A DNA stretch of 64,000 bases, taken from contig OZ218961.1 of the NCBI GenBank assembly GCA_965112735.1, positions 2,294,001 through 2,358,000 on the forward strand, read 5' to 3'. Every line of letters begins with the position of its first letter. The first letter of the stretch is position 1. The position numbers were made by a program, and so were the translations under genes. This DNA is from Phaeosaccion multiseriatum. Lineage: Eukaryota; Protista; Ochrophyta, other classes. Below, in pieces: positions 280 through 61,945 of this stretch. The notes below the pieces were generated by a model. That model saw only the letters and a program-made list of their open reading frames with translations, did no database searches and was not told the DNA's origin.

Positions 280-2570
280 CTGTTCAAGCGAGTCAAGCTT
301 GCCAGTGAGGTGTTCCATAAAGGCACCAAGTCCCGCCACCTCCGCCTCAGCCTCTCGGTCTTCATCAGAGCTTTCTTCATCGCCTATCAGCGCCAGGGGC
401 AGAGGCAGGGGAAGGGGGATGGGGGGGGGGGGCGGGAGGGTGAGGGTGAGGGTGAGGGTGAGGGTGAGGGTGAGGGTGAGGGTGAGGGTGAGGGTGAGGG
501 TGAGGGTGAGGGTGAGGGTGAGGGTGAGGGTGAGGGTGAGGGTGAGGGTGAGGGTGAGGGTGAGGGTGAGGGTGAGGGTGAGGGTGAGGGTGAGGGTGAG
601 GGTGAGGGTGAGGATGACGGTGAGGGTGAGGGTGAGGGTGAAGGGGGAGGGCGGGGATGACGGTCGGTGTGGGACAGAGGAGTACAGGAGGGGAGGAGGG
701 AGGGGGAGGTAGGAGGGGGTGGATGAGGGTGATAGTGTGTCGAATGCTCTACCATCCACTACCATCCCCTCCTCCCCCTCTCTCACTCTCTCAACTCACC
801 TTCCATGGCCACTTCTGGACTTGATGCCCGCGCTGGCCGCCCCCGGGAAGTCAGAGCGCTGCTTGTCGTGTTTGGGCGGGTGTGGTACCCACTTTGATGG
901 CCGCCCGCGCCTCTTGCACCTCCTCCCCGGCCTCTCTCCCCTACACGCATGGCCTTGCTACCACCTGAGGATACGTGCGACAGAGAGAGATGGGGTGAGA
1001 TAGTAAGAGAACAGCAGAGGGAACGTGAATGGGAGAAAGGCAGAGTGGGTCAAGATGGGAGGAGAGACAGACACACAGAGGGAGGGAGAGAGAGACAGAG
1101 AGAGAGACAGAGAGAAGTGACCTACTACGCCTGTGGGAAGGCACCAGAAGGCACCAATCATCAAGGAGAAGACTGGGGGACATGTGCCTTCTGCTGGGGT
1201 GGGGGGCTCTGGACTCACCTGTGCTCTTGGCGAAGCCTCTCCGGCCCGTGCGCTGGCTCATGTATTCGCCCCACAGCTGCACCGAGAGAGACGGAGAGGG
1301 GAGAAGAGGGGGAGGGGCGGATATATATATATATAAATGAGAGAGAGAGAGGGAGGGAGTACGTGAATGAGTTCACGTACAGGCTCTCCTTGTGTCCTTG
1401 GAGTAAGTGCGGTTAGAGGGACGGGGGAGCAACACACCACCTCCTCCCATCTTATGCCCGGAGCCTGCCTATCTGCCTGCCTGCCTGCCTGCCTGCCTGC
1501 CTGCCTGCCTGCCTTCCTGCCTGCCTGCCTGCCTGCCTGCGTATCTCCGTGCCTGCCTGCCTGCCCAACTGACGGACTGAGCGACTGACCTCCATGTCCA
1601 CCGAAGCGGGTCTCTTGGAGCCTGCAGCAGGCCCGAACGCCTCCATCGTGGCGAGCTGCATGGCTCTGTGGCGGTTCGCGCGTCGCAGCTTGGCCTTTGA
1701 GGTTATGCCTGATACCGCACCAACGCCACCGCCAGTGCGACTGCCTCCTCCCATCAGGCTTGCCATGCTACCGCTCGTGGTCATGGGGCGGCGGTGCTGA
1801 AGACCCAATCTCCCTTCGTCTGAGATGATGGAGAGGAGGAGGGGGAGGAGGAGGACGGCCGAGAGGGGGTTAGAATGGCGTGCTGTGGTCCACAACAGAA
1901 TGTGTGGATGCATCCTTCAGTGACTGGCGTAGGGCTCACCTGTTCTCACCAGGCCTCCCGCCATAGCCCCACCGCCACCTGCCCCACCCCCCCCTTCTCG
2001 CAAAGGCATCCTTCAATCTGTTTTCAGCTCACAAGGGCAGAAGAGTCCTGCTGATCTATTCCCGGGGAATCTGCCACTCTACTCCTCCATCCGACACATA
2101 GAGGGGATAAATCTACCATCCTCCTCTTTTAGCGATTATTTGTGGCCCCTTTTGCCTCTCCTGTTGGTCTTAAAAGGCCTTTGTTGCATGGCCCAGGGAA
2201 TACACGTTTCGTCGTCGCCAGTTGGATCTGGATTCCATCTCTTAGAGCACCATCGAGCTGAAACGGAAACTACAACGCCAACTGTAAGTGGCCAGGATTC
2301 GACCCTTATCGCCCTTACCTCACGGAACGCAGCTTCGTCGATAATTTCCTGTCTGTGTGTGACTGTTCTTCGTGTAATCATCTGGGGTATAGCCGAGGAA
2401 GACGGGCGTGCGAAATTGCCAAACCTTTTCCTACGCAGCTTGTCTTTCTGGCCTCCTTTCGCTGCGGACGAGCACCCCGAAAGGACTACGTCGACCGAGC
2501 CCGTCCGCCAAGGAGCAGGTCGGAAAGGACATCTGACGGAAAACCGTGCATGAAAGGGACTTCTTCTCAT
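280..2570 (-). CDS. Hypothetical multi-exon protein (3' end runs off the left edge; start codon uncertain)
   Basis: GT-AG-bounded exons on the minus strand: ~2318-2570 (..TVTHRQEIIDEAAFRE), ~1940-2017, ~1590-1820 (DEGRLGLQHRRPMTT..ASVDME), ~800-940, 280-384 (GDEESSDEDREAEAEVAGLGAFMEHLTGKLDSLEQ). Some junction phases were checked, not all. No family recognised. Confidence 0.55.
436..641. repeat. (GGGTGA)n telomere-like hexamer array, intronic
   Basis: About 30 near-perfect GAGGGT units, just upstream (in the minus-gene sense) of the acceptor at ~385-387. Confidence 0.95.
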
Positions 2571-2815
2571 CGGAGCTGTATCACAGCAGAGATCACAGCA
2601 GAGGGAGGAGGAAGCTCCCTGTTGTGAATGCCCCCCACGATGAAGTAGTTGAACAACGCCTAAGCGAGGCCCCGAGTCCGATCAACCAGGGGGGCTGACG
2701 AGGATCCCCTACAGCCACCCACCTCTCTCCCTCTTGCATTGTGTGTGGGTGGGGAGTGAGGTGAGGTGCAAGGGTCTCGGCCCACCTAGGTACTCCTCTC
2801 CCTCTTCCGTCGGGA

Positions 2816-60500: not shown

Positions 60501-61945
60501 CACTCATCGCTACCCTCCACGAGCATTGCTGTGGGCCACACACCCACAGCTGAGCTCCCTCCTGGAAGTGGGGGTAGGAGCGTGTGGCAGGAGGCGTGTA
60601 GGTAAGCAAAGTAGGCTAGGAGGAGGAGGAAGAAGGCAATGGAAAAGGAAGTGATGGCACACACACACACATACATACACACACAGACATATATACACAC
60701 AAATACATATATATACAGCACACACACACACACGTGCACGTACACAATCACACACCTGGCGCGGTGCGAGCAACGTCAATGGTCATAACACAGCAGAAGA
60801 AGGGGTTGAGTAGCAGCGTCCGCCCCTCCTGCTCCCTCCACACCCTCAGCTTGCCGTCCCTGGCGGCGCTTAGCAGCGAGCCGTCAGCTGTGAACTGGAG
60901 AGCCAACACGCCCCCCCGGTGCTGTGCCATTGTCTGCAGGCACATCTCTTTGTTGGTGAAGTCGCTCCAAGCATCCCACGCCTTGTTCGGTGCCGTACGG
61001 TGGCGGAAGAGGAACGATAAGAGAACAACAAGGCGGCGGGGATGGTGTGTCGTGGAATGGAATAAATTGTAGGAGGTTGTTGTGAACGTTGTTTTCCGCG
61101 CTCCACCCCACCGCACCCCACCGGCCCTCTCAGCTACCCACGCCCCTGTATCGCCAACACCCCCACACCCCTGTACTGCATACCTTGATCACATGGTCTG
61201 CCCCACCGCTGAACACCAGGGGCCTCCCCAGCCCGGTGAAGGTTCCTGCCCGTGTGTGGGTGAGGGCGGTGACGGCTCCTCTGTGTGGGGAAGAGGTGGT
61301 CATTGTGTCTTCCCTGCGCTCCCCCACCGCCGAGCCTCCGAACTTGTTCCGTGGTGTAAGCTTCCAGAAGGCGATTCGGCCGTCGGTCTTCACCAGGGGT
61401 AGGAGAGTGGAGGGAGGGAGAGAGGGGGTCAGCGAGAAGTGGAGGTAGGGGTTTACATGGACAAGTGAGAGAGTGAGACGATAGAAAATGCGTTGCCGGC
61501 AGCAGGGAGAGAGACGAGAGAAGGCGGGAGGGGGACGTTCGAGAGAGAGGCACCAAGATATGCTGCTAGAGAGACACCGAGAGAAACATTAGAAAGGAGC
61601 TACAAGAGAGGGGAGTCGCTCAGTACTCACTCTGCCAGCGAACATGAAGTCGTGCTCCGACTCCAGCTTGGAGGTGACCTCAAAGGTGGTATATCTGGGC
61701 CGGTTCTGGGACAGGTTGAAGTCCTGCGTGGTCATCTCATAGCGCGCCTGCCGCGTGTTACTGCTCCAATGCTTACCCTCCTTGTCCTCAGTCACCACCA
61801 GGCGCTCCGTGACAGTGCAATCCATCTCCTTCGTTGATGCTGGGTCGTTGGGCTGGGGCGCTGGGCCGGCTGGCCTCTCCTCTGCTGCTTGCTCCTGCGG
61901 GTCGACACTTCCTTCACCACGGTGATACGTGGGGAATGGGAGCAC
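54586..61945 (-). CDS. WD40-repeat protein, multi-exon (start uncertain)
   Basis: HRGAVTAL..VFSGGADHVIKAWD, HRGGVLALQF..LLSAARDGKLRVW, ISLSADGTCKIVD, VSAGLDGAVSVWE, HDNSVAAL, VSGCYDGQLNLW, FASAGNDGVVRLW..LEGHKDSVYAL, FSAGHEGIVRVWN. Stop at 54586. Confidence 0.9.
56885..57540. repeat. 15-bp (CCCATATGCCCTATA)n minisatellite in WD40 intron
   Basis: About 40 copies beginning right after the minus-strand donor at ~57550. Confidence 0.95.

Follow-up and report, generated by a model that had tools for sequence, protein, structure and literature searches.

Introns in a 64,000-nucleotide (nt) stretch of the Phaeosaccion multiseriatum (Ochrophyta) genome (contig OZ218961.1, positions 2,294,001 to 2,358,000; hereafter the window, numbered from its first letter) carry recurring oligomers that point one way after 5' splice sites (donors) and the opposite way before 3' splice sites (acceptors). 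An initial annotation singled out four such motifs, each with a G-rich orientation (G-form) and its reverse complement (C-form), and read them as a possible intron-definition code. Is there such a code, or do the motifs obey a more general rule? We find that the four motifs are repeat units following a general splicing-linked rule, with no special code. The transcript strand is G-rich in the 5' part of nearly every intron and C-rich in the 3' part, and all G-rich words and arrays conform to this polarity alike, in proportion to their G excess. All results refer to this one window of 64 kilobases (kb), to 46 introns and to our own gene models.

Strand composition along introns

On the sense strand, GC skew is +0.30 at positions +7 to +106 after 65 donors (positive at 49) and -0.47 at positions -106 to -7 before 60 acceptors (negative at 54), where the purine fraction is 0.30. 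The two kinds of flank differ strongly (Mann-Whitney p=8e-15), in genes of both orientations. When the 46 introns are pooled, skew by decile runs +0.50, +0.42, +0.23, +0.13, -0.06, -0.14, -0.25, -0.44, -0.54 and -0.53; the gradient reaches 100-150 nt into introns, and in 43 of the 46, G skew is higher over the initial 30% of the intron than over its final 30%. Net skew is -0.075 for introns and +0.12 for exons. Because the polarity reverses its sign within each intron, it is a property of intron architecture, most plausibly linked to splicing. Single genes show the same picture: a pepsin-like protease gene on the forward strand has skews of +0.36 in donor flanks and -0.58 in acceptor flanks, and a WD40-repeat gene on the reverse strand, with zero copies of motif 1, is polar in the same direction (donor side +0.45, acceptor side -0.38).

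The rule holds for words in general. We counted each 8-mer once per flank and took the rule to be obeyed when the G-richer form lay after donors and the C-richer form before acceptors; with rising G-minus-C excess, the obeying fraction climbs through 0.49, 0.56, 0.62, 0.68, 0.72, 0.79, 0.83 and 0.86 to 0.91. It also holds for tandem arrays, of which the 46 introns contain 81: of the 39 G-skewed arrays 32 fall in the first half, and of the 36 C-skewed arrays 31 fall in the second (p=2e-9), which places 63 of 75 skewed arrays on the expected side.

Such arrays dominate the introns. Tandem repeats make up 31% of the window (Tandem Repeats Finder) and cover 46% of the bases in introns but 1% of those in exons; exons have a median length of 107 nt and the satellite-filled introns a median of 351 nt. 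This is a GC-rich and intron-rich genome (57.6% G+C in the window), and the introns of the window are nearly half micro- or minisatellite. The whole window contains no Alu-like sequence, and an Rfam scan of it found no known family.

Gene strands were set independently, from Pfam domain matches to single exons. The GT-AG exon chainer drew on codon usage together with donor positions -3 to +6 and acceptor positions -3 and +1, and on nothing else, so intron composition was unable to bias the models. Since the automatic chainer is imperfect (it joins genes, absorbs G-form arrays into exons and misses small exons), it served only as a guide, and 66 anchor exons were curated by reading the sequence; inter-anchor introns of at most 900 nt and compatible phase gave the 46 analysed here. 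Two introns of a GCN2-like kinase gene are validated exactly, because three consecutive kinase exons (9747-9833, 10135-10198 and 10423-10544) abut residue by residue on GCN2 structures (residues 95-124, 125-144 and 147 onward of 1zyc_A).

Recurrence, orientation and spread of the four motifs

The motifs recur far more often than expected, as had been claimed. Motif 1 (GGATGGCAGTGGATGG) has 22 exact copies and 57 matches with up to two mismatches, against 0.05 expected from shuffles, and its core is the commonest non-simple 11-mer of the window (21 loci). Motif 2 (GTTGGTGATACAG) has 13 matches with up to one mismatch (0.08 expected), motif 3 (GGCATATGGG) has 47 exact copies and motif 4 (GGTGTCAGGAC) has 18 copies with up to one mismatch. 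Three of the four motifs are minisatellite units, with array periods of 10 (motif 1), 12-15 (motif 3) and 29 (motif 4). Because many copies are units of tandem arrays, they were collapsed to 55 loci (25, 12, 10 and 8 for motifs 1 to 4), which we placed in transcript orientation against the 66 anchor exons with a splice-flank window of 150 nt.

G-forms lie within 150 nt after a donor at 13 loci and before an acceptor at none, and C-forms before an acceptor at 15 loci and after a donor at four (Fisher p=7e-6 between the two forms); 18 of the 55 loci were not placed at a confident splice site. The polarity described in the initial annotation is thus tied to the transcript. On re-reading, its individual placements fit at 3121, 3580, 4812, 5540, 6375, 6833, 9931, 10397, 20241, 20327, 21330-21705 and 21892, at 45296, 45585, 45690, 45748 and 45945, and at 58004 and 56.9-57.5 kb, and the exceptions that it listed (17901, and TG tracts around 45160 and 46700) are real as well. 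Three G-form loci lie within well-supported exons (4866, 21820 and 54989) and several more within possible exons.

What does not stand is the idea of a four-motif grammar. At 41 of 53 loci, motif orientation equals the sign of the skew in the surrounding 160 nt after removal of the motif copies. Within the window, little bias is left once G/C skew is controlled for, which is the first of the two outcomes that the initial annotation named as counting against its reading; the skew pattern itself is real and striking. Furthermore, 20 of the 25 motif-1 loci, and 18 of the 21 loci of its core 11-mer, fall in the GCN2-like gene, whereas the WD40 and Cys-rich genes, with about 14.5 kb and some 20 introns, contain no motif 1 (p about 2e-5). 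Being nearly private to one gene, motif 1 is no universal signal and points instead to local spread. From the proposed code, therefore, we retain the polarity, which follows the splice sites and the transcribed strand whichever way a gene is oriented, and set aside the grammar.

Some motif copies could be translated. Read in any of the six frames, motif 1 shows no stop codon, and its arrays can therefore be exonized or skipped with the frame intact. G-forms of motif 1 within open reading frames (ORFs) of the GCN2-like gene (8036, 8288-8470, 15067, 17985-18108 and 23835) would translate as DGSGW or MAVDG. Motif 2 lies within CAG repeats at 54989-55001 and 58879-58891 (reverse strand) and would translate there as QQLVIQQQ; the former copy sits in a good exon of the WD40 gene, the latter 26 nt past the donor of exon 58918-59199, with the reading frame still open. 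A metagenome scan with the motif-1 16-mer gave only single chance matches on unrelated contigs, several of them from human-gut assemblies, and a literature search for the motif strings found nothing relevant. A possible likeness of motif 2 to a spliceosomal small nuclear RNA was considered and dropped.

AG exclusion and arrays at splice sites

The 3' parts of the introns are nearly devoid of AG. The nearest AG upstream of the 3' splice site lies at a median distance of 124 nt, against 13 nt in shuffles, and the AG-free zone spans at least 50 nt in 40 of the 46 introns; AG density drops from 11.5 to 0.4 per 100 nt across deciles. Within the last 100 nt, AG occurs 72 times and GA 112 times (observed/expected 0.79 and 1.22; 26 introns against seven, p=0.0085), whereas AG is the commoner of the two in the first 100 nt. 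The motifs agree with this distribution: AG is present in the G-forms of motifs 1, 2 and 4 but missing from every C-form, and motif 3, with AG in neither form, has the weakest polarity of the four.

Some arrays start or end at the splice sites themselves. At 16 of 65 donors an array begins at the donor, with GT within its first unit (e.g. (GT)n, (GA)n, (GGA)n, (GAGT)n and (GGGA)n), and a C/T array adjoins nine of 60 acceptors.

Pairing between intron ends

An intron whose ends are G-rich and C-rich, respectively, might fold back on itself, and it had been suggested that each motif pairs with its own reverse complement across the intron. Our results do not bear this out. No intron contains both forms of motif 1. 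In RNAduplex calculations for the 46 introns (first against last 100 nt), own ends pair at -50.6 kcal/mol, ends of foreign introns at -53.7 and shuffled ends at -53.0, and the own partner ranks at percentile 0.53 (not significant). Duplexes of 5' with 3' ends reach about -51 kcal/mol on average, against -20 for 3' with 3' ends. Whole-intron minimum free energy is -84.9 for native and -81.8 for shuffled introns, again not significant. Base pairs joining the first and last thirds are more numerous than after full shuffling (26.3 against 11.2, p=3e-4), but shuffling within halves preserves them (25.5 pairs), which makes bridging a by-product of composition.

The forms also fail to co-occur above chance. 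Three or more GGG are present in the first 40 nt of 19 of the 46 introns and three or more CCC in the last 40 nt of 31; 13 introns have both (12.8 expected), and none of the 46 shows the reverse arrangement. Fisher tests for GA with TC, GT with AC and GGGA with TCCC in the same intron were not significant across the 46, and many introns combine GT-type 5' arrays with CT-type 3' arrays, which are unable to base-pair. Across exons, a C-form upstream and a G-form downstream of the same exon were seen by eye at three exons, about as expected given the concentration in one gene. The two ends are thus polar independently of each other, and a generic, composition-driven bridging of intron ends is possible.

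Sequence shared among introns

A few short modules are common to different introns. In three introns, belonging to two genes of opposite orientation, motif 2 spans exactly +9 to +21, within a module of about 30 nt whose mirror image lies at the 3' end of intron 45681-45970, and AGCGATGGCAGTGGAT occurs at +7/+8 in introns of two genes. Intron 45681-45970 combines the mirrored module with a 9-nt terminal inverted repeat, a combination found in none of the others. All-against-all blastn of the 46 introns returned simple-repeat similarity only, with no extended unique or introner-like homology; relative position within the intron tends to be alike for matches in the same sense (rho 0.25) and mirrored for antisense ones (rho -0.35). 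The motifs are not randomly inserted fragments of a short interspersed element or a miniature inverted-repeat transposable element (MITE), a possibility raised at the outset: their orientation is strongly non-random, and around motifs 2 and 4 the flanks have no more than 10-15 nt in common.

Possible explanations

We think it probable that each intron end imposes its own, independent constraint, and that the two together sort rapidly growing satellites according to orientation. The first ~100 nt after the 5' splice site would be kept G- or GT-rich, with G runs, and arrays would often grow straight out of a GTGAG or GTGGG donor; the last 100-150 nt would be kept C/T-rich and AG-free, as an extended polypyrimidine tract combined with an AG-exclusion zone. 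Slippage would continually create and expand repeats, and copies that break the local rule on the transcript strand (e.g. an AG-bearing G-form downstream of the branch site) would be removed. The outcome would be that each repeat family takes its G-form in the 5' part and its C-form in the 3' part, the four motifs being the most recognizable units to pass the filter. The data show the polarity, how general it is, that each end behaves independently of the other, the AG-free zone and the absence of specific pairing; the probable cause would be selection on splice-site recognition, acting via enhancers made of G runs, binding to the pyrimidine tract and the need to avoid cryptic 3' sites. Some of the pattern probably also comes from neutral seeding by the splice signals.

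Several points weigh against sorting by end-specific constraints. The sample is a single window; the exons are our own GT-AG models and readings, only some of them anchored in Pfam or PDB, and a few of the 46 introns may conceal small exons. AG is depleted only modestly relative to what composition predicts (observed/expected 0.79), and GT/TG arrays are less polar than other repeats. Such a filter also leaves unexplained the spread of an exact 16-mer to 20 loci in one gene and the exact +9 to +21 position of motif 2 in three introns.

Other explanations fit parts of the data. Transcription-coupled mutational strand asymmetry would make skew follow the transcribed strand in genes of both orientations, as it does. 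However, such a process alone predicts one sign per transcription unit; with net intron skew close to zero (and of opposite sign to that of exons) and a flip in 43 of the 46 introns, a transcript-wide asymmetry is excluded as the explanation, and we give the purely mutational version, considered from the outset, next to no credence. Generic RNA bridging, in which base pairing between the G-rich 5' and the C-rich 3' half of an intron unites the splice sites, would make these introns a GGG/CCC counterpart of the AC/GT introns of fish. It is in line with the 26 first-third/last-third pairs against 11 after full shuffling, with the strength of 5' by 3' duplexes over 3' by 3' ones, and with what Lin et al. 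(2016, PMC4691745) describe, namely such bridging in fish and a GGG...CCC arrangement in 16% of the structured introns of human. We nevertheless consider it unlikely: own partners are not better than foreign or shuffled ones, within-half shuffles keep the pairs, native folds are not stabler than shuffles, the complementary repeat types lack the co-occurrence that defines the fish class, and many introns join array types that do not pair. Slippage might also simply expand existing seeds (the G-rich donor consensus and the pyrimidine tract), with orientation inherited and not selected. The arrays that begin at donors with GT in the first unit (16 of 65) and those that abut acceptors (9 of 60) speak for neutral seeding, but most polar arrays, as well as motifs 1-4, do not come from the splice consensus and many touch no splice site; the skew gradient runs 100-150 nt inwards, and the depletion of AG relative to GA in the 3' 100 nt suggests selection. 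As an explanation in its own right, neutral seeding is quite doubtful.

Descent from a common intron-generating element (introner- or MITE-like), with the end modules as relics of inserted or reverse-spliced copies in sense orientation, would explain the exact placing of motif 2 in three introns of two genes, its module mirrored in intron 45681-45970, the placing of AGCGATGGCAGTGGAT in two genes and the clustering of motif 1 in one. We find it very unlikely, because intron similarity is confined to simple repeats, no intron has both terminal modules, the common stretches do not exceed about 30 nt and polarity is equal in the WD40 gene, which has no such motifs. More improbable still is a specific motif code, in which dedicated RNA-binding or chromatin factors read the four oligomers. 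Exact 13- to 16-mers do recur far beyond chance, and words derived from motif 1 obey the rule in fractions of 0.88-0.94, slightly above the 0.68 of average words with equal G excess. Against this stand the lack of motif 1 in the introns of the WD40 and Cys-rich genes, the copies within exons, the fact that the two orientations are unrelated as RNA sequences and the success of local composition in predicting orientation.

Beyond sorting by end-specific constraints, there is a small chance that the satellite arrays are working parts of intron definition genome-wide, as a generic zipper or through end-specific protein recruitment, and replace the branch-site/U2AF-proximal 3' architecture in most introns. 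If so, repeat slippage would keep rebuilding functional introns.

Comparison with known systems

G-triplet intronic enhancers after the 5' splice site and the polypyrimidine tract are a known source of strand asymmetry (PMC10030826, citing Touchon et al. 2004; PMC4691745, citing McCullough and Berget). The pattern in the window is an extreme, satellite-built version of this splicing-coupled asymmetry. Both show G excess after donors, pyrimidine excess before acceptors, a sign tied to the transcript and independent ends. By contrast, the asymmetry here is far larger (about +/-0.5 over 100-150 nt per end, in 43 of 46 introns), consists for the most part of expanded satellites (46% of intron bases) and comes with a long AG-free zone (median 124 nt).

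Teleost (AC)m-(GT)n introns, according to Lin et al. (2016, PMC4691745), carry complementary repeats that co-occur in one intron and form unusually stable bridges. They resemble the present introns in having simple-repeat expansions at opposite boundaries, with fixed polarity and complementary composition, whereas here co-occurrence equals chance, own ends pair no better than foreign ones and stability equals that of shuffles. According to the same paper, introns with at least three GGG in the first 40 nt and at least three CCC in the last 40 nt make up 16% of structured human introns, four-fold over chance (PMC4691745). The share here is higher (13 of 46, i.e. 28%), but the joint frequency equals the product of the marginals.

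AG-exclusion zones with distant branch points, i.e. long AG-free stretches before 3' splice sites, form a minority class in human introns, whereas here they are the rule, with 50 nt or more in 40 of 46. Marine algae and fungi contain introner elements, near-identical full-length intron copies that lie in sense orientation across genes. The introns of the window likewise share sequence between genes in sense orientation, although only as modules of 10-30 nt. We did not find a comparable architecture in an alga in the literature, of which our coverage was incomplete.

If the pattern holds genome-wide, it would represent a natural extreme of intron architecture, in which nearly half of each intron is fast-evolving satellite that is still sorted by orientation at about 90% fidelity, and AG-free zones are several-fold longer than usual. 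Such a genome would be a system for asking (i) how far composition alone defines intron ends, (ii) how a branch point distant from the 3' splice site is selected and (iii) how repeat instability is reconciled with accurate splicing. The polarity is also a cheap predictor of strand and exons for the annotation of such genomes.

Genes and mapped loci

Table 1. Genes, motif loci and representative polar introns in the window
Feature	Position	Strand	Context
GCN2-like eIF2-alpha kinase gene	2816-23890	+	more than 26 short exons; RWD match in exon 3633-3764, Pkinase match in exon 10425-10544
Pepsin-like aspartic protease gene	42087-46098	+	at least 9 exons; PF00026 matches on three exons
MaoC-like gene	about 36.3-37.3 kb	+	domain match
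WD40-repeat gene	52821-61825	-	at least 14 exons; WD40 matches
Ankyrin ORFs	26.5-33.2 kb	-	domain matches
Motif-1 C-form	3121-3136	+	18 nt before acceptor of exon 3155-3236
Motif-1 C-form	3580-3595	+	37 nt before acceptor of exon 3633-3764
Motif-1 C-form	4812-4827	+	7 nt before acceptor of exon 4835-5042
Motif-1 G-form	4866-4881	+	inside exon 4835-5042, translated ...QMAVDG...
Motif-1 G-form array, 4 copies, period 10	5540-5596	+	from 14 nt after donor of exon 5395-5525
Motif-1 G-form array, 5 copies	6375-6529	+	from 21 nt after donor of exon 6309-6353
Motif-1 G-form array, 8 copies	9841-10018	+	from 7 nt after donor of exon 9747-9833
Motif-1 C-form, 2 copies	10363-10411	+	ends 11 nt before acceptor of exon 10423-10544
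Motif-1 C-forms	20327-20368	+	near end of intron starting at 20233 with motif 2
Motif-1 C-form minisatellite, 12 copies	21350-21692	+	ends 22 nt before acceptor of exon 21715-21859
Motif-1 G-forms, two	21820-21907	+	one inside exon 21715-21859, the other 32 nt past its donor
Motif-2 G-form	3773-3785	+	intron +9 to +21 after donor 3765
Motif-2 G-form	20241-20253	+	intron +9 to +21 after putative donor 20233
Motif-2 G-form (sense of WD40 gene)	58004-58016	-	intron +9 to +21 after donor of exon 58025-58180
Motif-2 C-form	45945-45957	+	13 nt before acceptor of exon 45971-46098
Motif-3 array, 28 exact copies, 15-nt unit, 40 units	56917-57525	-	G-form in sense of WD40 gene
Motif-3 C-form array, 6 copies, 36-nt unit	14094-14262	+	upstream of probable acceptor near 14305
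Motif-3 G-form	45296-45305	+	8 nt after donor of exon 45198-45287
Motif-4 G-form array, 8 copies, 29/81-nt units	12958-13218	+	after probable small exon near 12872-12917
Motif-4 C-forms, 2 copies	43291-43323	+	39 nt before acceptor of exon 43363-43495
Model polar intron, protease gene	45681-45970	+	donor, motif-1 G (45690), motif-4 G (45748), C/T-rich arrays, motif-2 C (45945), acceptor
Polar intron	5043-5394	+	GT/GC-rich array from donor itself (5043-5139), then (TC)61, C/T-rich to acceptor
Intron with (CCT)145	10545-11223	+	(CCT)145 fills 3' two-thirds
Intron with (GGA)n from donor	52928-53692	-	complementary mirror of (CCT)n intron 10545-11223

Some loci in Table 1 deserve comment. The motif-1 G-array at 9841-10018 and the C-forms at 10363-10411 belong to adjacent introns, with exon 10135-10198 between them. 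This G-array lies in a 71-nt tandem duplication (x2.8, 9816-10016), which also copies the last 17 nt of exon 9747-9833 together with its donor (CTTCAGACAG followed by GTCAGAT). The duplication thereby creates two degenerate extra donors inside the intron, the second of which would shift the reading frame if used. The surroundings of the motif-2 C-form at 45945 mirror the 5' module of the introns that start at 3765 and 20233. The motif-3 array at 56917-57525 begins 25 nt past the donor of exon 57551-57660 and occupies the 5' part of the intron.

Searches with single exons found the best protein relatives in environmental and marine-protist data. For one exon of the protease gene, phmmer gave a best relative with 76% identity and no self match, and the only named relative was a transcript of Rhizochromulina marina. 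The same gene holds the only candidate GC-AG intron among the 65 curated donors, at 43757 (forward strand; GAT followed by GCGTAAGT), after exon 43704-43756.

The ankyrin-repeat ORFs are three paralogues in tandem on the reverse strand (26572-27683, 28900-30291 and 32141-33232). They have almost no database relatives (a homologue search with the 463-residue ORF gave one weak match, with 30% identity, and an exact look-up of this ORF returned no record), and the first copy, readable only as four pieces, may be a pseudogene. Long hexamer arrays, (CCCTGA)n on the forward or (TCAGGG)n on the reverse strand, with 24-82 units, resemble a telomere-repeat variant. They lie at 26014-26284, 28470-28613, 31210-31530 and 34166-34653, and also at 436-651, and alternate with the tandem ankyrin ORFs as though part of a duplicated unit.

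CpG observed/expected is 0.54 in the window, which at its G+C content suggests cytosine methylation in the source genome. Elsewhere, a 477-nt unit is repeated 2.2 times with 97% identity at 49714-50767, and two near-identical Cys-rich exons (SWIG[ND]...; 51184-51239 and 51684-51739, reverse strand) lie 500 nt apart, with flanking intron ends that are also near-identical. Together these point to recent tandem duplication of exon-plus-intron units. A 71-nt unit repeated 5.2 times with 98% identity at 47540-47908, in a reverse-strand gene, begins 5 nt past the donor of exon 47914-47996; this array is a young minisatellite and is not G-rich.

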